A DNA stretch of 64,000 bases from Macrostomum lignano (lineage: Eukaryota): assembly GCA_002269645.1 (NCBI GenBank), contig NIVC01003146.1:1-64000 (forward strand). The letters run 5' to 3'. The notes under the pieces were generated by a model. The model made no database searches and had not been told where the DNA came from. It worked only from the letters and a program-made list of their open reading frames with translations. The position numbers were made by a program, and so were the translations under genes. Every line of letters begins with the position of its first letter. Within the stretch, counting starts at the first letter, position 1. Below, piece after piece: positions 349 to 64,000 of this stretch.

Positions 349-29186
<28,838 letters not shown>

Positions 29187-30198: not shown

Positions 30199-30512
<314 letters not shown>

Positions 30513-30549
30513 TCTTCATTTCAGTGTCTGTCTTGGTGTCTGTCCTAAT

Positions 30550-31868
30550 GCTATAAGAATCGACATGAATCATGATTAATAGAAACCGACAAGAGTCATG
30601 AGTCATAAGAACATGTGTCGTAAAATCCGGCGTGAATCATAAGAACCGACATGAGTCATAAAAACCGACATGAGTCATAAAAACCGACACGAGTCATAAA
30701 AAACCGACACGAGTCATAAAAAACCGACACGAGTCATAAAAACCGACATGAGTCCCAGTCGCGAGACTTAATGCCGACCCAGCAACATGCATTCCAAATT
30801 TCCAAATAGTCACATTCCCAACCGTCACATTCCCAAACTTTACATTCCCAAACGGTCACACACTCAAATTGTCACATTCCGAGCGTAGCTACGCAAGTTA
30901 AAAAAAGATTTTAAGTTTCAATAAACTTCAAAATTTTCGAAAAAGTTCTGGCAAGAATTTTTTTTCTTTTTTCGAATTCCAGAATCTCATGTCTAATCAA
31001 AGTCTCACTGCTATACTGGCTACTGCTCGCTAGTAGTAACTATATTGTTTATTAAAAATGTGGGTTAAATATCGATAACTTGACTTGAATGGAACAGGAG
31101 TTCTTAACAAACACTAGAGTCTAACTTGTGCGTATGGACAGAAAAATGGGCTGGTGCACCCTTCAGCTAGTGCACCCTGATCCTTCAGCTGGTGCCCCCG
31201 ATCCTTCAGCTGGTGCCCCCCGATCCTTCAGCTGGTGCCCCCGATCCTTCAGCTGGGTGCCTCCCGATCCTTCAGCTGGGTGCCTCCCGATCCTTCAGCT
31301 GGGTGCCTCCCGATCCTTCAGCTGGGTGCCTCCCGATCCTTCAGCTGGGTGCCCCTCCCCGATCCTTCAGCTGGGTGCCCCTCCTCGATCCTTCAGCTGG
31401 GTGCCTCCCAATCCTTCAGCTGGGTGCCCCTCCCCGATCCTTCAGCTGGGTGCCTCCCGATCCTTCAGCTGGGTGCCCCCCGATCCTTCAGCTGGTGCCC
31501 CCCGATCCTTCAGCTGGTGCCCCCGATCCTTCAGCTGGGTGCCTCCCGATCCTTCAGCTGGGTGCCTCCCGATCCTTCAGCTGGGTGCCTCCCGATCCTT
31601 CAGCTGGGTGCCTCCCGATCCTTCAGCTGGGTGCCCCTCCCCGATCCTTCAGCTGGGTGTCCCTCCCCGATCCTTCAGCTGGGAGCCCCGGATCTTTCAG
31701 CTGGGTGCCCCTTTCCGATCCTTCAGCTGGGTGCCCCTTTCCGATCCTTCAGCTGGGTGCCCCCCGATCCTTCAGCTGGGTGCCCCATGATCCTTCAGCT
31801 GGGTGCCCCTTTCCGATCCTTCAGCTGGGTGCCCCTTTCCGATCCTTCAGCTGGGTGCCCCCCGATCC
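30550..31868 (-). repeat. Inverted diverged duplicate of intronic DNA at 14370-17870 (minisatellite A - AT-rich core - minisatellite B - minisatellite C), lacking both exons
   Basis: The reverse complement reproduces, in order: the CAGCTGAAGGATCGGG array; core words CTGTCCATAC.GCAC, GAACTCCTGTTC, AAGTCAAGT, GCAGTGAGA, TGATTAGAC, TTTATTGA.ACT; the GGGAATGTGAC array; TGCATGTTGCTGGG; and the ATGACTCA.GTC.G array. Confidence 0.85.
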
Positions 31869-32640
31869 TTCAAGGCGGTCAGGAGTGCTTCGGACTGCAG
31901 GACAGCCCTCACGGAACGGAAGTCCGCTGCGATGTCGCAGATCCTCGCGATCATCAGACACCAGACCGCCGAGGTAGACGAACTGCTGACAGCGCCTCGG
32001 CAGAAAATTGCAGCCTCAATTTCGTCCGGCACTCAGAGCACGACGGTCTTCTGCGTGGTGACCACCAGGCCGACAGTCGCCGCAATGCTTTCCAGCCGGT
32101 CCAGCCGCCGCTGGGCGCCCTCGACGGTCGAGGACAGCAGGGCGAGATCGTCGGCGGAGCCAAGCACACTGAGCTGCCTCTCCGGTTGGCGCCGACCCAC
32201 GCGTCGCTGCAGCAGAAAGCCGTCGTCGTTAGAAGGAAGAGCGGTCCGCAGCACCCAGTCAAGCACCAGGACGAACAGGAACGAAATCCGACAGGCCGTC
32301 CGGTGTCAGCACAGCAGCGTTCGTGCCATGATACAGCGCCATGACGGCGGGAATCAGCTGCTCTGGTATGCTGGGAGCACAGCACTCACGACCGAGTCGA
32401 AAGCCTTCCTGAAGTCAATAAAGAGAACAATCAGGCTCGACTCGGTCCGCGCTTTCTCGATGACTCGGCGAAGAGCCAGGATCTGCGCCACTGTGCCGCG
32501 CAGGACTGCAGGCAGATACCTCGGTGCTTCTCAAGCCGTGTGGTGCCCCCCCCCCCCGATTCTTCGGAATAGCGATGTGCGCCGTGTTACATTCGCTGTG
32601 AGCCGCCTCACCGAAAAGCAGGCGGTTCATCACATTGGCA
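31869..32640 (-). mobile_element. Degenerate non-LTR retrotransposon (LINE) reverse transcriptase fragment
   Basis: Minus-strand peptides across frameshifts: LFVLVLDWVLRTALP, SVLGSADDLALLSS (YADD box mutated to SADD), AATVGLVVTTQKT, QQFVYLGG; upstream IAIPK and LFIDFRKAFDSV-type motif. Truncated where the CAGCTGAAGGATCGGG minisatellite begins. Confidence 0.85.
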
Positions 32641-32697
32641 ACCTCACTGGCCTCACAGCTGAGTCGCAGCCCTCATAATCGAATTGTCAAAACCGAA

Positions 32698-36157: not shown

Positions 36158-39100
36158 TCACAGCTCGGACAGCAGCCGCATGGAGGCGTCGCTTCTGGCA
36201 GTTTTGATGGCCTCCATCGGCAGACCGCTGTTGTTCCTGCGCAGCTGCAGGGTCTGCTGTCCGCGCAGGTCGTTGGCTTGCGCCTTGGCGGCGGTGCTGG
36301 AGGCCACATAGGCAGCGGCCAGCGAGTGCGAGCTGGTGGAGTTCAGCTTGTTCAGCTGCTCGACGGACTGCTGCGGCCGCTTGGTGGAGTTGGTGACGGA
36401 CCGGACGCTGCCGCTGCTGCCGCGGAGTTTGTCGTCGCGGTTGATTCGCCGGAAGCCGAGGTAGTCCAGCGGCTGGCTGGGCGGCGCCTCCTCCAGGCAG
36501 GCCGCCACGCAGCCCGGATGTCTGGCTAGCTCCTCGGCCACATCCGTCATGGTCGGCCGCTTGTCGTGCTCGAAGCTCCAGCAGCAGGCCATGAGGTTGC
36601 GCAGCAGCGGGTTGACGTCCACCGGCAGGTGCTCCAGCAGGGTGTCGCCGCGTTTCACGGCGTCGCAGACCTCCTCGTTGGAGCGGCTGCCGTAGGGGAA
36701 CTTGCCGAAGGTGACGATCTCGTACAGCACGATGGCGTAGGACCAGACGTCTGACTTGTAGGTGAACAGGCCGTACTGGATCGCCTCCGGCGACATCCAG
36801 CGGACTGGCAGCATGCCGCGGCGATCGAATCTGCGGGCAGCATGGAAGTAAAGTACTGTTGCAGCAGTGGGATTCAATGCATTACAGCAATGGAAGGCAC
36901 TGCATTACAGCAATGGAAGGCATTGCATTACAGCAATGGAAGGCACTGCATTACAGCAATGGAAGGCACTGCATTACAGCAATGGAAGGCATTGCATTAC
37001 AGCAATGGAAGGCACTGCATTACAGCAATGGAAGGCACTGCATTACAGCAATGGAAGGCACTGCATTACAGCAATGGAAGGCACTGCATTACAGCAATGG
37101 AAGACACTGCATTACAGCAATGGAAGGCACTGCATTACAGCAATGGAAGGCACTGCATTACAGCAATGGAAGACACTGCATTACAGCAATGGAAGGCACT
37201 GCATGACAGCAGTGGAAGGCACTGCATGACAGCAGTGGAAGGCACTGCATTACAGCAGTGGAAGGCACTGCATTACAGCAATGGAAGGCACTGCATTACA
37301 GCAGTGTAAGGCACTGCATTACAGCAGTGGGAGTCACTGCATTACAGCAGTGGGAGTCATTGCATGACAGCAGTGGAAGGCACTGCATTACAGCAGTGGG
37401 AGTCATTGCATGACAGCAGTGGAAGGCACTGCATTACAGCAGTGGGAGTCATTGCATGACAGCAGTGGAAGGCACTGCATTACAGCAGTGGGAGTCATTG
37501 CATGACAGCAGTGGAAGGCACTGCATTACAGCAGTGGGAGTCATTGCATGACAGCAGTGGAAGGCACTGCATTACAGCAGCAGTGGGAGTCATTGCATGA
37601 CAGCAGTGGAAGGCACTGCATTACAGCAGTGGGAGTCACTGCATGACAGCAGTGGAAGGCACTGCATGACAGCAGTGGAAGGCACTGCATGACAGCAGTG
37701 GAAGGCACTGTAAACCAAGAATTGCATTAATTGCAAGCAGTTATCAATTGCAACAACAGCCAGTCAGCCAACTGGCACTCAACAACGTAAACAAACAAGC
37801 GGCAGTTTCGTTGGAAAGTCGGAAAACGAGCGATTTCAACTCTCTGCGCAAGTTTGAAAGCTTCAGAGCGAGCGCGCACAGTGGGGCACAGGGCGCAGGG
37901 TTGTAAAACACCCCCTCCTTTCGGACTCAGTACCAGTTTAATGCTGGTAGCGCGCGAACAAGCAGAGAATTCTGCAACTTGCACTTTTAGGGCCTTGAAA
38001 AAGTTGCCAACAGCGATTTACCAGCGGGCTTGTCAGCTTAACCACTTAGAGAGCTGCGCGCGAGTTGACACGAAACAGTGGACAGTTGAAGTTTATAGCC
38101 TTAGATTCTTAGCCATAAGATCTCGGACATAAAAATTTAAAAGGCCCCGGACAGTCGGACACCCAGCTTAAAAACCCCAGACACTCAGTTTACAACCCGG
38201 ACACCCTCATTACAAACCTAGCTCTCAGACACTCAGCTTACTAACCCCGGGCACAGCTTATAAATCCCGGACACCCATCTTATAAATCCCGGATATCCAT
38301 CTTATAAATCCCGGACACTCATCTTATAAAACCCGAACAACCAGCTTATAAATCCCGGATACCCAGCTTATAAATACCGGACACCCATCTTATAAATCCC
38401 GGACACCCATCTTATAAATCCCGGACACCCATCTTATAAATCCCGGACACTCATCTTATAAAACCCGAACAACCAGCTTATAAATCCCGGATACCCGGCT
38501 TATAAATCCCGGACACCCATCTTATAAATCCCGGACACTCATCTTATAAATCCCGGACACTCATTTTATAAAACCCGGACACTTATCTTAAAAAACCCGG
38601 ACAAACCCCGGACACCCTAGGCAGAAGACAGCAGTCCCCCAGCTCACCGATAATAGTCCTTCTTGTCGCTGACCTCCCTGGCCAGCCCGAAGTCGCAAAT
38701 CTTGATGGTGAGCTTGTCGGTCACCAGGCAGTTGCGAAGCGCCACATCCCGGTGGATGTACTTGACCCCGTGCAGGTACTCCAAGCCCTTGGCGATGTCT
38801 ATAGCAAAGTTCGTCAGCGTAGTCGGCAGGCTGGCCGAGAACTCGCCGGGCTCCCTGGCGTGGACGCGCCGGGAGATCAGGTAGGTCTTCAGGTCGCCGT
38901 GCAGGCACATCTCCATGATGGCGTAGAACGGCTCCTCCTGGGTGGACACGGCCAGCAGACAGACGATGTTGGAGTGCTTGAACTGGCGCATCAGAGTGGC
39001 CTCGCTCAGGAAGGTGCACTTCTCCGAGTTGCTGGCCGTGTCACGGAGCGACTTCAGCGCGCAGGGAATCCACTGGTTCTTCAGCTGCACCTCGCCGCCG

Positions 39101-42100
39101 AGAACGATGCCGAAGGCGCCTTCGCCGAGCTTCCTGTTGACGGACACGCGGTCCCTCGGCACCTCAATGTCGGCCAGCCGCTGCTTCAGCTCCATCAGCG
39201 GCTCGTCCAGGAACATCTGGCGCTTCATCTGCTGGTGGTTGACGTACCGGAACCCGACAACTGCCACCACCACCACAAGGATGATGAAGAAGATGATGAC
39301 GCTGAAGGTGAAGATGAGGTTCACCTTCTGGCAGTCCAGATCTGGCATGCGCAGCAGAGTGCGGATGAAGTCGTTCCAGCCGCAGGACTCGCGCGCCAGC
39401 CGCTCGATGAATTTAAAGTTCGACTTGAACTCTTTGAAGTTTGTAGTGTTCTTCATGGAGCCGTTCTGAGGATTGGGCAGAGCGGTGTGGCACTGTTTAT
39501 CTTGGATCATTGTTCTCATATATCTGAGCATTGGTTCTCATATCTCTGAGCATTGTTCTCATATATCTGAGCATTGGTTTTCATATCTCTGAGCATTGTT
39601 CTCATATATCTGAGCATTGGTTTTCATATCTCTGAGCATTGATTCTCATATATCTTAGCATTGGTTCTCATATCTCTGAGCATTGATTCTCATATATCTG
39701 AGCATTGGTTCTCATATCTCTGAGCATTGGGTCTCATATTTCTGAGCATTGGGTCTCATATCTCTGAGCATTGGGTCTCATATCTCTGAGCATTGGGTCT
39801 CATATCTCTGAGCATTGGGTCTCTATCTCTGAGCATTGGGTCTCATATCTTTGATCATTGTTCTCATATCTCTGAGCATTGATTCTCATATCTCTGAGCA
39901 TTGGGTCTCATATCTCTGAACATTGGTTCTCATATATCTGAGCATTGGTTTTCATATCTCTGAGCATTGATTCTCATATATCTTAGCATTGGTTCTCATA
40001 TCTCTGAGCATTGATTCTCATATATCTGAGCATTGGTTCTCATATCTCTGAGCATTGGGTCTCATATTTCTGAGCATTGGGTCTCATATCTCTGAGCATT
40101 GGGTCTCATATCTCTGAGCATTGGGTCTCATATCTCTGAGCATTGGGTCTCTATCTCTGAGCATTGGGTCTCATATCTTTGATCATTGTTCTCATATCTC
40201 TGAGCATTGATTCTCATATCTCTGAGCATTGGGTCTCATATCTCTGAACATTGGTTCTCATATCTCTGAGCATTCTCACAGCTCTGCACATGAATACAGC
40301 CAGACCCGGACACTCACCTGGAAGGTCTCCCAGTTGTACCTGAACAGCTGCTGGGAGGTGAAGCCGAGCTTATCGCCAGAGTACTGGTGCAGGTACACCA
40401 TCATGGAGCCGGAGCGGACATTGTGCAAATCGTTGAAGCTGACGTTGTGCGCGTCCCTGGCCATTTCGGAGGGGAAGTCCGTGCTATTGATCTTGGCCAG
40501 GTAGGAGTTCACCTGCAGTGCAATGGGAGGCTTGATTTAGGGCCATTCAAAGCCTAGTGAAGAGTGTAGGATAATTGCACTCGCAGGTAAATAGGTCATG
40601 ACCTCAAGCAAAGCAACAAAACGGGGTCATGACCTCAATCAAGGAACAAATGGGGTCATAACCTCAATCAAAGCAACAAAACGGGGTCATGACCTCAATC
40701 AAAGCAACAAAACGAGGTTATGACCTCAATCAGAGCAACAAAAGGGGGTCATAAACTCAATCAGAGCAACAAAATGGGGTCATGACCTCAATCAGAGCAA
40801 CAAAACGGGGTCATGACCTCAATCAGAGCAATAAAATGGGGTCATGACCTCAATCAGAGCAACAAAAAAGGTCATGACCTCAATCAGAGCAACAAAACGG
40901 GGTCATGATCTCAATCAGAGCAACAAAAAAGGTCATGACCTCAATCAGGGCAATAAAATGGGGTCATGACCTCAATCAGAGCAACGAAATGGGGTCATGA
41001 CCTCAATCAGAGCAACAAAACGGGGTCATGACCTCAATCAGAGCAACAAAACGGGGTCATGACCTCAATCAGAGCAACAAAATGGGGTCATGACCTCAAT
41101 CAGAGCAACAAAATGGGGTCATGACCTCAATCAGAGCAACAAAACGGGGTCATGACATTAATTTAGACAAGGTAATAACCTGCAACTAAGAGGCCGTAAT
41201 GCTTGTAGAAGCTTAAGGCAACAATAAGAATTTTGAGTAGTAAGTAAAAAGCAAAATCGAATCAAAGTTTCAACCATTTCCATGAAAAACTAAAAGCAAA
41301 AACTGAAATAGAACATTTTGTACTCTGAGAGAATCGGCTACATGCGACTTGGTACATGCATAATGTAATATAAAAGTACACACAGCGGTTCATGAATTCC
41401 AGTCAAACAAAAAAATATTGCGACCTTTCAGCGAGCCCCGTATTGACAAAACACAGCCAGCCAGCCAGTCAGCTCGGTGTGTTGGCTGTCAGCCTCTCCT
41501 CACGTACCCTAACAGCTGTTAGTGTAAGAGGGGAACCCAGCGACCCCAGGCCCCGCCCAGGCGTACCACACGGGCATTGGAGAAGTGGTAGGTGCTGCTC
41601 GGGTCGTCCTCGATTAGGAGAGCCACCGAGTTGGCCAGGACGCTGACCGCATCGCTGGCGTAGCTGTGGAAATAGTCCTCGTCCAGGGAGTGCTCGTGTC
41701 GCTGCCCGCTGCCGGCCGAGGTCACGTTGATGTAGTTCTTCACAATCAGATGCTGCTTGGCCGGCTGCAGCAGCTTGGAGTGCGGGCAGTGGGTCTCCTG
41801 CAGACCGGGCAGGTACTGGCTGCAGTTCACCTTCTCCGTGCCGTTCACCTGGCCTGGTGTGGGGAAGGGTGCAAGGGCTGGGCCTTGACTGATATCGGCT
41901 GGAGAATGGGGATCCAAGTGTCCGAAACACGGGACACCCCAACTTCTGACAACTCATCAACTTCATAAACTTCTTGACACCTGATCAGCCTATTAAACCT
42001 TGGACACCTCACCAACTTCCTAAACCTCGGACACCTTATCAACTTCCTAAACCTCGGACACCTTATCAACTTCCTAAACCTCGGACACCTTATTAACTTC

Positions 42101-43900
42101 CTAAACCTCGGACACCTCATCAAATTCCTAAACCTCGGACACCTCATTAACTGCCTAAACCTCAGACACCTCATCAACCTAAACCTCGGACACCTCATCC
42201 AATTCCTAAACCTCGGACACCTCATCAACTTAAACCTCGGACACCTTATCAACTTCCTTAACCTCGGACACCTAAACTTTTAAAACTCCAGACACCCTAC
42301 CAGTGAAAAATTCGGTCACGGAAACATTCGAAACTCGGACACCCCAGCTTCCGACACCTCGGACATCCAAACATTCAAAACAAAAACCAAGGACACCGCC
42401 GCGCTGTTCCAAAACCTCGGACATCCCACCCCAACTTTTGAGACTTCGGTCACTAAATTCCAAAATCTCGGACACCCCTAGCTTTGTGTAACAACAACAT
42501 CCGATATGTATCGAAAAAAGCGATTCAAAGGGAGAATTGAGCACTCACCGCTTAAAAAGATCTTTCTGCTCCAGTGGGCGAGAATGAACAGGTAGTTATT
42601 ATCGGGAGTCATGTCCAGCTCCGCAGCGGCGCACAGGTACAAACAGGTGCCCCTATCAAAGTAGTCCATGGCCAGCACCTGGCAGCCTTCACGTCGCATT
42701 GATTTCAGATTCTTCAGCGCCTGCTTGTAGCTCAGCCGCTCCTCTTCGATCACCTCCTCGTGGCAGACGTTGATGGTGCCGGAGTCCAAGAAGGCGGTCT
42801 TGTTCAGGAACATCTTGTTGCGCACCAGCAGCCCGATGGTGTCCCACTTGCGCTGGTTCAGGTAGCTGGTGATCGTGTCCGAGTACGGCTCGTAGCTGGG
42901 GATGGTGCGGTAAAAGTACGGATAGCGGGAGGTGTCGCTGTACACCTGCGACTCCACTGTGGGGGAGATGACCACCGTCTGGAAATTGTTGCTGGCCTCC
43001 ACCACGGGTTCGATCGTGTCTGAGCAGGTGGCTCCGATGACGCCAAGCAGCGGCTGCTTCTTCGGCTGCAGCAGGGTGCTGATGTAGAATCCCAGCTCTG
43101 CCGACTTGTCGCAGTCCACCGCACCGTTCACCAGCTCGATGTGGTAGCCGAGGTCGGAGAGCCGGCACTTCGGCTGTCCGGAGCAGTTGCCCCAGTTTAG
43201 CTCCCCGACTTCCTGAGCAGGTGGGGAGATTTGGGATTTCTACTGAGTTCTATTGGGGAGATCTGGGATTTCTACTGAGTTCTATTGGGGAGATCTGGGA
43301 TTTCTATTGAGTTCGATTGTGGATATTTGGGATTTCTATTGAGTTTGATTGGGAGATTGATGATTTCTATTGAGTTCGAATAGGGAGATTAGGGATTTCT
43401 AATGAGAGTTCGATTGGGGAGATTTGGGATTTTTACTGAGTTTGATTGAGGAAATTAGGGATTTCTACTGATTGAGATTTGGGATTTCTATTGATTGGGG
43501 AGATTTAGGATTTCTAATGATTGGGCAGATTTGGGATTTCTACTGAGTTCGATTGGGGAGATTTGGGATTTCTACTGAGTTCGATTGGGGAGAATTGAGG
43601 GAACACCGGGATTCTTGAAAGTACATACAATGAATTATTTCTTAGATTAAAGGGAGTACAGCTCGTAATAAGCTGGGTACCTTGCCCGTAGAGGTGAATC
43701 TTCCTCCTAGCGGGATCTGCTGCGCATTGCAATTATCAGCTCAGACCCACCTGCTGCCTCAAAGAATCTCCGCCCGCAACTGTTACCTCCTACTGAGTCT
43801 TCCTGTCTCATTAATTGTCAGGCCAGACTCCCCCCCTCCGCGGCAGCTTCATCAGTTCATGAGTCACATGACTGCGGCCGCGGGTTGTTGCAGTCGGGTG

Positions 43901-43970
<70 letters not shown>

Positions 43971-46900
43971 AAATGCAGTAACTCCTGTGCCTGCTCTCGG
44001 AGACAGGTGCCAATATTAGCACCGGAAGTTTGTAATATAAACTGGCAGCCTGCCCTGTAGTCAGATGACTAAGTTAGATTAGTTAACCTTGAGATGTACT
44101 TTGGCCACGACTGAGGCACTGTGTCCCTGTCCGTTCTGAACTTTTGCTAAGGTCTTAATCATCAATTATCTTACCTTTAATAGACTGAATAATCTACCAA
44201 ATCTACTCAGCAGCATCTCTACCTCACCCCAGTCTAAATATCTACCCCCCAGTCTACATCTCTACCTCCCCCAATCTATATCTCTACCTCCACCAGTCTA
44301 CATCTCTACCTCCCCCAGTCTACATCTCAACCTCACCCCAGTTTACATCTCTACCTCCCCCAGTCTACATCTCTACCTCCCCCAGTCTACATCTCTACCT
44401 CCCCCAGTCTACATCTCTACCTCCCCCAGTCTACATCTCTACCTCCCCCAGTCTACATCTCTACCTCCCCCAGTCTACATCTCTACCCCCCCCAGTCCAC
44501 ATCTCTACCCCCAGTCTACATCTCTACCTCCCCTCAGTCTACATCTCTACCTCCCCCAGTCTAGATCTCTACCTCCCCTCAGTCTACATCTCTACCCCCC
44601 AGTCTACATCTCTACCTCACCCCAGTCTACATCTCTACCTCACCCCAGTCTACATCTCTACCCCCCAGTCCACATCTCTACCCCCCCCCAGTCCACATCT
44701 CTACCCCCCAGTCCACATCTCTACCCCCCCAGTCTACATCTCTACCTCCCCTCAGTCTACATCTCTACCTCCCCCAGTCTAGATCTCTACCTCCCCTCAG
44801 TCTACATCTCTACCCCCCAGTCCACATCTCTACCTCCCCCAGTCTAGATCTCTACCTCCCCTCAGTCTACATCTCTACCTCACCCCAGTCCACATCTCTA
44901 CCTCCCCCAGTCTACATCTCAACCTCACCCCAGTCTACATCTCTACCTCCCCCAGTCTACATCTCTACCTCCCCCAGTCTACATCTCTACCTCCCCCAGT
45001 CTACATCTCTACCTCCCCCAGTCTACATCTCTACCTCCCCCAGTCTACATCTCTACCTCCCCCAGTCTACATCTCTACCTCCCCCAGTCTACATCTCTAC
45101 CTCACCCCAGTCTACATCTCTACCCCCCAGTCCACATCTCTACCCCCCCAGTCCACATCTCTACCCCCCCCAGTCCACATCTCTACCCCCAGTCCACATC
45201 TCTACCCCCCAGTCTACATCTCTACCCCCCAGTCTACATCTCTACCTCCCCTCAGTCTACATCTCTACCTCCCCCAGTCTAGATCTCTACCTCCCCTCAG
45301 TCTACATCTCTACCCCCCAGTCCACATCTCTACCTCCCCCAGTCTAGATCTCTACCTCCCCTCAGTCTACATCTCTACCTCACCCCAGTCCACATCTCTA
45401 CCTCCCCCAGTCTACATCTCTATTAACTACAATCTACATCTCTACCTCCCCCAGTCTACATCTCTATTAACTACAATCTACATCTCTACCTCCCCCAGTC
45501 TACATCTCTACCTCCCCCAGTCTACATCTCTACCTCCCCCAGTCTACATCTCTACCTCCCCCAGTCTACATCTCTACCTCCGCCAGTCTACATCTCTACC
45601 TCCGCCAGTCTACATCCCTACCTCCGCCAGTCTACATCTCTACCAACTACAATCTACATCCCTACCTCCGCCAGCCTACATCTCTACCAACTACAATCTA
45701 CATCTCTACCTCTCAGACTACACCTTTAACTCTCCAATCTACGTCTCTACCTTCTCAATGCACATCTAGCTACATTATCTCACCTCCGCCACCTTCTTAG
45801 TGATTCTCTCATTAGAGAAGCGCTTGCCGCCGGGGAACATGCCGGCCAGGTACAGGTACTTCTTGTCCGTCCGGTCCGGCAGGTGGGCGCAGAACTCGCA
45901 GCTGTCCCAGGCCTCCATGGCCCGGCCAAGCCAGTCACAGTGCTGCCCGCCGGCCTGGCTGTAGTTGAAACGCAGCGACAGCAGCAGCCGCTCCAACCGC
46001 GGGTCCTGGCCGGCCACCGCCGTTGCCATCGACTTTGTCCGCTTGCTGATCACCGGCCGGCCGGAAAAGCGCCGGGCCGCGTCCGGGACGTCCGCCAGGC
46101 TGGCCGCCGACAGCCAGCCGCCGCAGTCCGAGTCACAGGCTGCCGCTGGCGACATGGTGTACTGGAAGCTGGGTGAGGCAATGATGAAGCTGGGTGAGTC
46201 AATGATGAAGCTGGGTGAGTCAATGATGAAGCTGGGTAATGATGTCAAAGCTGGGTAAAGCAATAATGAAGCTGGAGGTGAGGCAATGATGAAGCTGGGT
46301 GAGTCAATGATGAAGCTGGGTGAGGCAATGATGAAGCTGGGTAATGATGTCAAAGCTGGGTTAGGCAATGATGAAGCTTGGTGAGGCAATGATGAAGCTG
46401 GGTGAGGCAATGATGAAGCTGGGTTAGCAATGATGAAGCTGGGTTAGCAATGATGAAGCTTGGTGAGGCAATGATGAAGCTGGGTAATGCAATAATGAAC
46501 CTGGAGGTGAGACAATGATGAAGCTGAGTGAGACAAGAGGAACGAATGAGAAATAGCTCTGCCATTTTGTTACAAAAAAAGAACAAAAGGCAGTTTTTTG
46601 GCGCAGTTGCCTGTGGATTTTTGGCCCCACCCCTTCTGTCCATAAAATATACCCGCATGGCATCCGAACAACGCACTTAATTGACCTCTACCCACCAAAC
46701 AAGTGCACAACTCAAGTGAGAACAGTCTCCAGAGTGTGAACTCAGTGCACAGCATCCGGAAGCTTCATCTGCCTACCCGCATTTTGTTTGCCCAACTCCG
46801 CCCACCTGTGAACCCACTTAAGCCCTCAAAAAGCTCAAGGCGCAGCTCCCAGTAACAATCCTTTCTATCTGAAGTTTTCAACTATTTGCTCAGGCGGGCG

Positions 46901-47282
46901 CCAGCTCAGATAAGCAGCCCCTCGCTCACCTCTGCTCGAACAGTTCACCAAAATAAGCTCGATCATCGCCGGATGAAGCATTGAACAGCTGATCCCGCCG
47001 GTCTATGAGGCCCATATCGATTGTGCAGCTGCTGGCGCTGCAAGGGGGCGGAAGCGGAATTCAGCTTCACTTTGATGACGTAACAGGCTTTTTAAATAGC
47101 CGCTGATATGGATAATTATCTCACTGTTACTGATTGCTTGATAAATGAGTACTGGCTGCCTGCACTGCCGATATGCAGGCAGAGTAGAAAGCATGAATAT
47201 TCAAGTCTGTATAGGAAGCTGTATAAATCTGTTGGATAGAAGACAGACAGAAGACAGACAGAAGCCAGAAAAACAGACAGAC

Positions 47283-47337
<55 letters not shown>

Positions 47338-48472
47338 CACAGACAGACAGACACACAGACAGACAGACAATCACGTTTCGTTCCTCGCAGACAAAAGTTG
47401 AACAGCATAAATGGTAACCAACTCAGACCCCGTCACAAATCATGGGGACTCATGGCGGGCTTTCCAAAACCACCCGCCCTTCTGGATTCCCCAAAACAGA
47501 GCAGCAGGGGAGGCGGCACTCACTGCAGCGGCGGTCTGCTCAGAATTTGCACGTCGCGATAGCGGAAGAAGTCGGTGAGCAGGGCGGCAACGACTCGGGC
47601 GGTGAAGAGGCCGGCGGCGTCGGGGGGGCCGCAGACCGACACGGGCAGCGGCTGCGAGTCCGAGACGCTGGCGAAAAAGTAGCGAGGGCGCGACGACACG
47701 GCTGCGGGTTGCCGGGGAGGGGGTGAGGGTCACTTGATAATCCGAGTTGCATGCTTAGATTTGGGAGGCTAGCCCAGCAACTGAGGAACTGGGAGGCTGG
47801 CCCAGCAACTGAGGAACTGGGAGGCTGGCCCAGCAACTGAGGAACTGGGAGGCTGGCCCAGCAACTGAGGATCTGGGAGGCTGGCCCAGCAACTGAGGAA
47901 CTGGGAGGCTGGCCCAGCAACTGAGGAACTGGGAGGCTGGCCTAGCAACTAAAGATCTGGGAGGCTGGCCCAGCAACTGGGGATCTGGGAGGCTGGCCCA
48001 GCAACTGGGGATCTGGGAGGCTGGCCCAGCAACTGGGGATCTGGGAGGCTGGCCCAGCAACTGAGGATCTGGGAGGCTGGCCTAGCAACTGAGGATCTGG
48101 GAGGGCGGCCCAGCAACTGAGGGTCTGGGAGGCTGGTCCAGCAACTGAGGATCTGAGAGGCTGGCCTAGCAACTGAGGGTCTGGGAGGCTGGCCCAGCAA
48201 CTGAGGATCTGGGAGGCTGGCCCAGCAACTGAGGATCTGGGAGGCTGGCCCAGCAACTGGGGATCTGGGAGTTTAAGATAAAAAGTCTGCCCAAACAGCA
48301 GCACAGACTTACAGCCATTGAACCGGTTTACCAGGTCTGGGCACTCATTGGCAGACACAGTGCACAGGGGCAGAGGCAAGCTGAGCAGCAGCAGCAGTGG
48401 CAGCAGCTGGCTTCTCAAATGCCAGCACTGCTCAGGCGCCAAGGCAGCCCCTCTTGAACTGCAGTTGCTCAT
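36158..48472 (-). CDS. VKR: Venus kinase receptor (Venus flytrap module + TM + insulin-receptor-like tyrosine kinase)
   Basis: Well-phased exons 45784-~46161, 42549-43212, 41567-41853, 40318-40512, 38648-39492, 36158-36830. Tentative 5' exons 48313-48472 (signal peptide LLPLLLLLSLPLPLCTVSA), 47524-47701, 46930-47037, with probably one or two more small exons near 46700-46870. VFT motifs YLAGMFP, GVIGATCSD, SDTSRYPYFYRTIPS; TM LIFTFSVIIFFIILVVVVAVVGF; kinase LGEGAFGIV, IHRDVALRNCLV, ICDFGLAR, DYYRFDRRGMLPVRWMSPE, KSDVWSY. Confidence 0.88.
36877..37710. repeat. 23-bp minisatellite (GCATTACAGCARTGGAAGGCACT)n
   Basis: Located in the last VKR intron. Confidence 0.95.
38270..38610. repeat. 22-bp minisatellite (TTATAAATCCCGGACACCCATC)n
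   Basis: Located in the last VKR intron, near the donor at 38647. Confidence 0.9.
39505..40273. repeat. ~22-bp minisatellite (CATTGGGTCTCATATCTCTGAG)n with a ~330-bp block duplication
   Basis: Rare variants TATCTTAGCA, CTCTATCTCT and TTGATCATTG each recur about 328 bp apart. Confidence 0.93.
40595..41155. repeat. 31-bp minisatellite (TCATGACCTCAATCAGAGCAACAAAAYGGGG)n
   Basis: VKR intron. Confidence 0.93.
41985..42275. repeat. 27-bp minisatellite (AAACCTCGGACACCTYATCAACTTCCT)n
   Basis: VKR intron. Confidence 0.9.
43215..43590. repeat. ~31-bp minisatellite (GGGGAGATTTGGGATTTCTACTGAGTTCGATT)n
   Basis: Abuts the VKR acceptor at 43213. Confidence 0.88.
43907..43966. repeat. (GA)n microsatellite
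   Basis: Direct reading. Confidence 0.95.
44215..45720. repeat. ~22-bp minisatellite (CCCCAGTCTACATCTCTACCTC)n
   Basis: About 68 copies in a VKR intron. Confidence 0.95.
46165..46530. repeat. 21-bp minisatellite (CTGGGTGAGGCAATGATGAAG)n
   Basis: Merges directly into the VKR acceptor near 46162. Confidence 0.93.
47277..47369. repeat. (GACA)n microsatellite
   Basis: Direct reading. Confidence 0.93.
47765..48270. repeat. 28-bp minisatellite (GGCTGGCCCAGCAACTGAGGATCTGGGA)n
   Basis: Located in the first VKR intron. Confidence 0.94.
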
Positions 48473-48539
48473 GCTAGCAGTGCCTGCAATACAGGTGCAC
48501 TTGCAAGTGGCCAATAAATTCAAAATGAGGCTAAAGAGG

Positions 48540-50470
48540 CATATAGGATAAAAATAGCATTATTATTTGATTTCAGTTGTTTAAAACATTATTGGACTAG
48601 GCCTATAAGTAGTAAACTTGCAAGTCCAATCTAGCCAATGAGAAAAAGCAGCCAATCAAGAATAATAGCCAGTACCTTAGGTAAAGGCCCTATACCTAAA
48701 CTATCAGATTTAGGAGTTTTGATGATATTAATTTAAAAAAATTAACATTTCTAATAACCAATTATTAATTATATAATTTCTAATACATATTAAATTATTA
48801 ATTAATCAATCTAGAACCTATAAAAAATAAACCTATTAATGAATAATGATTATTATTTGACTTGTCTAAACTGCTATATCAACTAGTTAATCTTATAGTT
48901 TATATATCATATGTCATTAACACCTTATAATTATCAATTTGCTAAAACATTATATATTGCTAGGTCCTTGGTTTAGTTTACTTTATAAATAATAGGTTTA
49001 ATAGCCAATGGATCATTGCTAAGCTAAGGCAAAAAGCATTTTATCTAAATATTCTATGTTTACTGAAATGCTTATAATATTGTATATAATTAAAACAAAA
49101 TGAAATATCAAAGATAATCAATACATTCAACTTGGCTAATATTAGGCCTTTCTAAATATACTAAATCTCTAAGGTTTGTATGTTTGAATGAATGAATGCT
49201 TGTCCATAATATTTTCTAAATGTAAAAACCCGCCTTAAATAAAAACTTAATTGTCACAATGATTTTTATATCCAAGCATAAGTTATAAATATAAATTAGA
49301 ATAAATTAATAATAGGCCCTATACACTTAATTATCTCTAGTATGCTATAGTTTGGATCATGTATCAATGTATGCCAGGCTTAATGCTGGGAAAAAATGAC
49401 AAGACCACATTTGTCTAGGTTTGTGTGCCAATACAAAAAAATTGTCATTTGATACAATGTATCTGCTGTGTCATAGACGCTGGGATATATCCTAATGTCT
49501 ATTGAAAAATAATAAGATGCTTATTGTACACTAGGACATGTCTCCTTGTACATGTATACTAGAAGTCTTTGATTATCAATTAGGTAAATACATATAAACT
49601 CAATTAGTAGTTAGTCAGTATAAGATAGATATAGGCTAGTAGACTTATAACTTAAATAATCATATAACTTAATTATCTAGCTAGCCATCTGCTTAATTAT
49701 CTAGCTAAAGGAATACTCATTATTAATTTTTGCTATATGACTACTTATTTATTATTAGTTTTACTAGTTGACAGTTGATAATTTATTAATTTAAACTTAG
49801 CAATCTTCCTATTTAATCTATTATAATATTTATTTTTAAACTAAACAGAAAAAATAAATATCTAAAAAATAATTCAAGGAACAAAAGTAAAGAATTATTG
49901 ATTTAGATTGTTAAATATAAATATATAAGATATAATATAATATATAAAAACATAAACTTGAATTTTATACTAAAATTTTATTATAAATATTGGAATGAAA
50001 TATAAAGATTTATAGTGTTATTGCTAGTTTTAAAGTTGAATTATTAAAAAATCTATTACTAAAGTGTATATATTGTTGCTGATAGCCTGATGTTGATATA
50101 TATTAGGCCTAGGCCTAGTAGAATTTAATTCAAGGATCCTTCATTATTAGTTACTGCTTTAGTAGAGAAAAAGTTACAACACTATACTATATGCCTCTTA
50201 TGATCTTATCTAAACTGAAATAAGAATGATATATAGCAAGTTCCTACCTAGGCCTATAGTTAGAATGAAAGCAATAAAGATATGTGAGATTATAAGACAT
50301 TATAATTCATAATCTGGTATATTATAATCTTAGATTAGGCTTTGTTAATTATAAATTAACAATTGATAAATTATATCAATTTTTCATCTAGATGATTATT
50401 GTAAGGCAGCTTTTAAAAATACATAGGCTAGTTTTTAGGGCCTAATAATTCTGTCTTGTCTTGCCATGGT
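48540..50470. other. Extremely AT-rich, CpG-depleted block between divergent VKR and laminin genes
   Basis: I found only about two CG dinucleotides by eye (near 49230 and 49477) in about 1.9 kb; TA, CTAG and TAGGCCTA-type words are abundant; no ORF. Confidence 0.8.
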
Positions 50471-50477
50471 TATAATA

Positions 50478-51256
50478 TAGCTTTTTGCAGCCCATTTGGG
50501 CCTATGCACATTGAATTTAATCCAAGATATGGTTGCCAATGTAATGTAGCTTTTGTCTATGGTAGCAAGGCTGGCACAGCGGCATTTAATTTGGTCCAAC
50601 AAGCATTCAATTTGCTCTATAGCTTCATTTGCAACTGCTGCGGAGGAGCAAGATCAGCCCCACATGGCACAATTGTGGATCATAGGCCTATGCTAGGTTG
50701 TTGAACGAATGCCATGGCATTGGCTGGTGATTGAAGCGCTTGACAGAGGTGAACACCTAAAGGCTGCTGAATGTAAAAGAAAATATTGTTTTCAGCATCC
50801 ATCAGTGCGTTGAAAATCTGCCGGCAGAGATCGCCTGCGAAAGGGTGGCAATCGCCAAGGCAAGTTGCTCGAGAGCCTCAGGTCCAACTGCTACGAGTAC
50901 TCGATGCAATTGAGACGAACCCTTCGTTGACGGTGCAGAAAATGCAGCAGAAGTTTAAGGAACAGTTCCAGTTGGTTATCAGATTTTGAATATCAGCAGA
51001 ACTCTTGAAAAGCGACAGAAAATTGTCGGTAGAGACGCTGACATTCCAGCGGTACGCAACAACCCGCAGACGGTTGCGAGAAGGCAGGAGTTTGCCGAAA
51101 GGCTCACGAGCGTTTGAACCAAATTTGATGCTTGTTGGACCAAATTAAATGCTGCTGTGCCAGCCTTGCTACCATAGACAAAAGCTCCGTTACATTGGCG
51201 AACGTATCTTGGATTAAATTCAATGCGCGTAGGCCCAAATGGGCTGCAAAAAGCTA
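50478..51256 (+). mobile_element. Inverted-repeat DNA transposon relic with IS630/Tc1-like HTH fragment
   Basis: 137-bp inverted arms 50478-50614 and 51120-51256 (10 mismatches); internal peptide LLRVLDAIETNPSLTVQKMQQKFKEQFQLVI resembles the winged-helix region of IS630/Tc1-mariner transposases; no DDE domain seen. Confidence 0.65.

Positions 51257-51631: not shown

Positions 51632-64000
<12,369 letters not shown>

Follow-up and report, generated by a model that had tools for sequence, protein, structure and literature searches.

About 1.3 kb of DNA in the flatworm Macrostomum lignano, at positions 30553-31872 (-) of contig NIVC01003146.1 (assembly GCA_002269645.1), is a decayed inverted copy of intron DNA that is colinear with 14371->17915 (+) of the same contig. 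We analysed positions 1-64000 of this contig, which we refer to as the window, and we call the copy the ghost because it carries the repeats of its source while lacking the exons embedded between them. We suggest that the ghost is probably the relic of an old, local, DNA-level inverted segmental duplication that lost its exon pieces by ordinary deletions and has since drifted. It sits between a RyR gene and an ANF_receptor/PK_Tyr receptor gene, 1.36 kb from the RyR ATG on the upstream side, in what is either the promoter/intergenic region or a 5'UTR intron.

The source locus contains two genes in opposite orientation. The RyR gene lies on the minus strand with a start codon at ~29192 (-), and its large ORF carries Ins145_P3_rec, MIR, RIH, SPRY and RyR domains. 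In protein searches this ORF is 53% identical to a mollusc RyR, the longest match is 1608 aa, and the matches include neither a ~5000-aa RyR nor a M. lignano RyR model. Nested antisense inside RyR intron 16919->12450 (-) is a three-exon EF-hand gene, 14105-16067 (+), whose 68-aa product with two EF-hands (MSQDRK...EFLAYMK) is identical to M. lignano PAA53041.1/PAA86180.1. Intron 2 of this gene falls between loop positions 11 and 12 of the second EF-hand; the last exon encodes the loop-position-12 Glu and the exiting helix, and read-through of the donor gives Gly and then a stop. A Ca2+-binding protein gene is thus nested in a Ca2+-release channel gene, an arrangement common to the window and two paralogous contigs, NIVC01000292.1 (L002) and NIVC01000874.1 (L003). 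These two were compared as 22-kb loci reaching ~27.5 and 28.6 kb in window-equivalent coordinates, which is short of the ghost position, and exact look-ups of two ORFs at the border between the ghost and its flanking LINE gave no match. The features of the source locus are as follows.

14371..16006 (+): source minisatellite A, 65 units, filling intron 2 of the EF-hand gene almost completely
16007..16126 (+): segment missing in the ghost (deletion 1), comprising the 3' end of the intron, the terminal EF-hand exon and the 59 nt of 3'UTR that follow it
16046-16067 (+): last EF-hand exon, encoding EFLAYMK and the stop
16127..16417 (+): source core, comprising distal 3'UTR, the poly(A) signal region and DNA downstream of the EF-hand gene
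16418..16902 (+): source minisatellite B, 30 units of 16 bp
16903..17490 (-): segment missing in the ghost (deletion 2), comprising 17 nt of intron and nearly the whole 577-bp RyR exon
17496->16920 (-): 577-bp RyR exon, with the AG of its 3' splice site at 17498-17497 (-)
17516..17915 (+): source minisatellite C with a degenerate tail, 17 units of 19 bp
28637, 28441, 28151, 26530, 26043-23206, 19292, 18220, 17496-16920, 12450 and on to the contig start (-): RyR exons that follow the start codon

The ghost and its immediate flanks are composed of the following features.

31890..32650 (-): flanking non-LTR reverse-transcriptase fragment with frameshifts and many stops (RVT_1, E=7.9e-7)
31160..31872 (-): ghost minisatellite A, ~30 units of 21-26 bp each
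30885..31150 (-): ghost AT-rich core, homologue of 16127-16415
30795..30880 (-): ghost minisatellite B remnant, ~5 degenerate units of 15-16 bp each
30778..30790 (-): relic of the RyR exon start and 3' splice site, with the sequence GCATGTTGCTGGG (reverse-complemented, cccag/CAACATGC)
30553..30756 (-): ghost minisatellite C with a degenerate tail, ~7.5 units of 19 bp
30199..30512 (+): flanking (CAGA)79 microsatellite, adjoining the C end of the ghost

The GC-rich exons of the window are separated by over 30 distinct minisatellite arrays, reflecting the repeat-rich genome of M. lignano, more than half of which is reportedly repetitive, with 15% simple and tandem repeats and 180-312 Mb in recently duplicated blocks (PMC5730564). 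Minisatellites also fill the introns of the receptor gene that lies upstream of RyR, at ~36158-48473 (-). This gene, which pairs an ANF_receptor (Venus-flytrap) ectodomain at 42478-43131 with a tyrosine-kinase domain at 38644-39531 that continues in 36158-36877, looks like a Venus kinase receptor by its predicted domains; no M. lignano protein was among the matches when its VKR-like kinase ORF was used as a protein query. Beyond it, Laminin_N and laminin-type EGF domains at 52079-54295 (+) point to a netrin- or laminin-like gene. GC content is 0.20-0.28 at 48500-50500, between the receptor and laminin-like genes, and 0.6-0.69 in exons. Three long (GACA)n microsatellites share one orientation (12640-13279, 30199-30512 and 47241-47369). 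Two inverted-repeat pairs of ~140 bp, 33022-33160/33775-33909 (92% identical) and 50470-50614/51120-51264 (91%), each enclose ~0.5-0.6 kb and are possibly MITE- or foldback-type elements.

Homology between ghost and source extends over all four modules. An earlier sequence-only reading of this DNA had claimed that the minus strand repeats the order A, core, B, C, and BLAST of the reverse-complemented ghost recovers exactly this order, with 85-87% identity over ~750 bp for array A, 84% over 87 bp for B and 72% over 195 bp for C. The core is the sole inter-locus match of unique DNA within the window. Its two copies (16127-16415 and 31150-30885) align with a local score of 119, far better than shuffled sequences (16.4 +/- 2.6, maximum 27, n=300), and other AT-rich DNA of the window, the block at 48.5-50.5 kb, serves as a natural control that matches the core at E~1 only. 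In a MAFFT alignment the core is 75% identical over 280 aligned nt (K2P 0.30) with many small indels, which bears out the description of a diverged AT-rich core of ~300 bp (we measure ~290 bp). The same reading had noted a rare variant common to both A arrays, and we find a single TAGCTGAAGG in each, at 15981 in the source and 31169 in the ghost, in the same register within the last full A unit. Its absence from paralog L003 makes this variant suggestive rather than decisive. Past the outer edge of A homology is at chance level, and on the C side it ends at ~17915/30553 in the degenerate C tail (score 28 against 11 +/- 2). Neither weaker homology beyond A or C nor relics of neighbouring exons were found on either side of the ghost.

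The direction of descent is recorded at the junction between ghost B and C. The 13-mer GCATGTTGCTGGG occurs in the window at 17489-17501 (+) and 30778-30790 (-) only, with 0.16 matches expected when one mismatch is allowed, and on the minus strand it reads cccag/CAACATGC, which is the 3' splice site of RyR together with the bases that open the exon. The ghost thus keeps the terminal partial unit of B, GGAATGC, with which source B also ends, followed by the RyR acceptor and 6-9 bases from the start of the exon, as had been proposed; a remnant of functional source sequence is present in the copy. Arrays A, B and C are retained along with the acceptor, so that the ghost is a copy made at the DNA level and not a spliced retrocopy.

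These bases also bear on the converse proposal, made as an alternative in the sequence-only reading, that a pre-existing A-core-B-C element donates its modules, in order, to introns around exons. The conserved module order and the placement of the source exons exactly between modules would fit such a donor, as would 9-10-mers that are common to arrays somewhat above expectation (10 pairs versus 2.3, k=9). However, the RyR acceptor and first exon bases are unexpected in a donor that predates the exon. The 577-bp RyR exon is ancestral, because it can be aligned to mollusc and rotifer RyRs, and so is the last EF-hand exon, because it supplies the loop-position-12 Glu and the exiting helix; both are therefore older than the ghost. 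Since the ghost carries the RyR acceptor and exon bases, it derives from an ancestor with at least the RyR exon and is not a pre-existing donor. The ghost moreover has no termini or target-site duplication (TSD), no third copy is present in the 64 kb and the two 22-kb loci, nearly all other arrays are locus-specific, and we know of no mechanism that places ordered modules around pre-existing exons. We therefore reject the donor element, which we regard as extremely improbable.

The two segments missing from the ghost were correctly recognized from the sequence alone: 16007-16126 is absent with a join at GC, and 16903-17490 is absent with a join at TGC. In the alignments below, a slash marks each breakpoint.

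Junction 1, source: ...CTCC TAGCTGAAGGATCGGGGGCTCC CAGC/TGACACTCC...(exon 3)...CAACTTGC/CCATATCTCTGTCC
Junction 1, ghost: ...GCAC TAGCTGAAGG GTGCAC CAGC/CCATTTTTCTGTCC, that is ...CACCAGC/CCAT..., with GC microhomology
Junction 2, source: ...GTTTTGGAATGC/GCCGCC...(RyR exon)...GAGTGC/ATGTTGCTGGGG
Junction 2, ghost: TTTGGAATGC/ATGTTGCTGGG, with TGC microhomology, coinciding with the relic at 30778..30790
B/C junction 21-mer: TTTGGAATGCATGTTGCTGGG

We estimate the probability of such microhomology arising by chance at ~0.16 for at least 2 bp and ~0.05 for at least 3 bp, or ~0.008 jointly. Within the slack that the microhomology allows, neither missing piece has GT-AG or CT-AC ends on either strand, and splicing as their origin is rejected, in agreement with the earlier argument. 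The idea that the copy had lost precisely its two coding segments holds for the loss and overstates the precision, as intron and 3'UTR are also gone. Deletion 1 took out 39 intronic, 22 coding and 59 3'UTR nucleotides. Deletion 2 took out 17 intronic nucleotides together with 568-571 of the 577 nt of the exon, leaving 6-9 nt. The left breakpoints both lie inside the last partial array unit, in A at CAGC/TGA and in B at GGAATG/C, and both deletions extend from the array end into unique DNA on its 3' side. The two deletions (n=2) thus track array ends and not exon borders. Because the exons sit between arrays, array-anchored deletions take out exons, and the exon-less look of the ghost is a by-product of this anchoring and not of an exon-targeted process.

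Taken with the RyR relic, which supports the part of the earlier proposal that described a locus-derived duplicate deprived of two coding segments at microhomologies, these junctions suggest the following history. Approximately 3.5 kb of the RyR/EF-hand locus (14371-17915) would have been copied in reverse orientation and inserted 12.6 kb away, into non-coding DNA 1.36 kb upstream of the RyR ATG and beside a dead LINE, in a copy that lacks two unique GC-rich stretches just 3' of arrays A and B. These stretches may have been skipped during the duplication itself, through polymerase template switching at the array ends in a discontinuous event of the MMBIR/FoSTeS type. Alternatively, a plain inverted duplication may have been followed by microhomology-mediated deletion or replication slippage seeded in the unstable arrays. 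The two routes fit the data equally well. The core would then have drifted to K2P 0.30, with arrays that are now shorter than those of the source. The outer junctions, LINE/A and C/microsatellite, carry no mechanistic information.

Several known systems resemble the ghost. Relics of partial, non-processed segmental duplications, or pseudo-loci, are likewise DNA-level copies that are colinear with their source, include intron and intergenic DNA, diverge neutrally and accumulate many deletions with loss of their coding parts. The ghost is unlike a typical relic of this kind in that it is inverted, retains 1.3 kb of ~3.5 kb, consists almost entirely of minisatellite, and has a coding remnant of only 6-9 nt plus a splice acceptor. 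MMBIR is described as producing duplicates that are discontinuous, interspersed with deletions and inverted stretches, and joined at microhomologies (Hastings et al. 2009, PMC2621351). The ghost has parallels to this in an inverted copy near its source, skipped segments, 2-3-bp microhomology and breakpoints at likely replication-stalling sequence, here tandem arrays. The ghost differs in that the event is old, its outer joins are uninformative, and sequential later deletions fit it equally well. Minisatellite instability with flanking deletions offers a third likeness, both in deletions that run from a terminal partial unit into the unique flank and in the quick change of copy number and dominant unit between paralogs at this locus, although for the ghost the link would be drawn from two breakpoints and not from a polymorphism.

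The age of the ghost relative to other duplications in this genome can be read from the core. The source arrangement A - exon 3 - core - B - RyR exon - C is present in both L002 and L003, and core K2P between the window source and these paralogs is 0.003 and 0.017 (range among the three contigs 0.003-0.02). The ghost core differs from each of the three contigs by 0.28-0.31, and the ghost duplication is therefore far older than the recent M. lignano duplication. The same comparison addresses whether the ghost arose through a misjoined or chimeric contig in the assembly. Such an error would be favoured by a genome that is very rich in repeats, partly duplicated and was difficult to assemble (PMC5730564). 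A misassembly, however, predicts a near-identical copy; the two cores differ at 25% of positions and by numerous small indels, and we therefore conclude that the ghost does not reflect an assembly artefact. The recurrence of the source arrangement in two independently assembled contigs and the unique sequence flanking the ghost also argue against a misjoin, leaving this explanation with a negligible probability.

Against the slow divergence of unique sequence, the arrays turn over very fast: A and C have changed between paralogs at <2% unique-sequence divergence. In array A, 26-mers predominate in the window and in L002, 22-mers in L003 (10272-12038), and array C has 17 versus 9 copies between paralogs. 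Between ghost and source, array lengths are 713 versus 1636 bp for A, ~86 versus 484 bp for B and ~200 versus 400 bp for C. Most of the ~30 other arrays in the window have locus-specific units. Different arrays do share 9-10-mers above the level of shuffled units (10 pairs against 2.3 expected at k=9), and those with shared words fall into groups beginning at 14371, 38158 and 46165, at 2254 and 19582, and at 9825 and 47758; CACCCAGCT, for example, is found in three arrays and CCCACAGAT in two. Such words hint that some arrays grew from common seeds or are locally related.

The sequence-only reading had also proposed that the exon-less cassette may now move as a composite element, and the present data do not bear this out. 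There are no terminal inverted repeats (TIRs) in 30500-31950 and no TSD, the longest word shared by the flanks being 5 nt, equal to the shuffle mean. No third copy was found in the 64-kb window and the two 22-kb paralogous loci. Scans of metagenome DNA yielded 0 matches, either for a pair of A units or for a motif from the core, a protein search with the array-A ORF gave nothing at E<=1e-5, and the core contains no Rfam families or tRNA-derived SINEs. A cassette propagated by, for example, LINE machinery, through transduction or reverse-transcriptase template switching, could nonetheless be suggested by the minus-strand order of RT fragment, A-core-B-C and (TCTG)n, which superficially resembles a LINE body, transduced DNA and a tail; reverse transcriptases do switch template at microhomologies. 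Yet the LINE is cut within or just after the RT domain and not at a natural 3' end, the fragment ending ~35 codons past RVT_1 and precisely at the start of ghost array A, and no LINE lies upstream of source A. The three (GACA)n microsatellites of the window have unrelated flanks and are not the tails of one family, and with no TSD and no other copies in the sequence covered, mobility appears improbable. LINE-mediated retrocopying or 3' transduction in particular is rejected, given the truncated RT and the unrelated (GACA)n flanks. Introner elements and satellite-carrying transposons resemble the ghost in placing repeat-bearing, intron-associated DNA at more than one position. The ghost differs from them in having no TIRs, TSD or splice sites of its own, in the two copies seen, in its host-exon relic, and in a status as intron that is only putative. 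What these data describe is most likely a commonplace partial segmental duplication, old and inverted, and nothing in the sequence covered points to a new kind of mobile element.

Array A does not fit simple decay as readily as the rest of the ghost. Its 23-mer CAGCTGAAGGATCGGGAGGCACC ranks first among the units of the ghost array (9 of 29 units) and, in identical form, third among those of the source array (13 of 65). The 16-nt CAGCTGAAGGATCGGG does not vary in any of the four arrays, despite 25% divergence of the core. Neutral drift would predict weaker conservation of array A than is seen, and duplication followed by drift therefore needs an extra assumption, either ectopic gene conversion or constraint on the unit. 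Ectopic gene conversion between long, similar and nearby arrays is the simplest explanation. Selective constraint on the A unit is also conceivable, as the unit contains a CAGCTG E-box and is located upstream of and within a muscle/neuron channel gene.

A further possibility is that the ghost has been kept because it is useful, whether as a putative upstream enhancer of tandem CAGCTG E-boxes or through pairing of the inverted copies in the RyR pre-mRNA to give dsRNA or circular RNA. Such a role is compatible with a duplication origin. It would account for the 16 invariant nt of the A unit and the identical 23-mer in the face of 25% core divergence and fast turnover, and the position 1.36 kb upstream of the RyR ATG would suit it. 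On the other hand, B, C and the core are decaying at a roughly neutral-looking 72-84% identity, and gene conversion between similar arrays 14 kb apart explains A equally well. We consider a useful ghost unlikely and infer that the relic probably has no function. Somewhat less likely still is that the cassette, or array A with its CAGCTG 16-mer, occurs in more dispersed copies or has been kept similar by selection or gene conversion; if so, what lies at the RyR promoter would be a minisatellite cassette that propagates or has a function, and not a dead relic.

As an old inverted duplication that has drifted, the ghost has a significance that is largely confined to its locus, where it provides a worked example of how an inverted duplication decays in introns packed with minisatellites. 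In such decay, deletions would start at the unstable ends of arrays, and the unique, exonic sequence that separates the arrays would be the first to disappear. Relics of this kind can mislead searches for repeat families and for 'introners'. The inverted pair, with ~700 bp of array A at ~85-87% identity, could also serve as a substrate for inverting RyR exons 1-8, or as a source of dsRNA if the ghost is transcribed.
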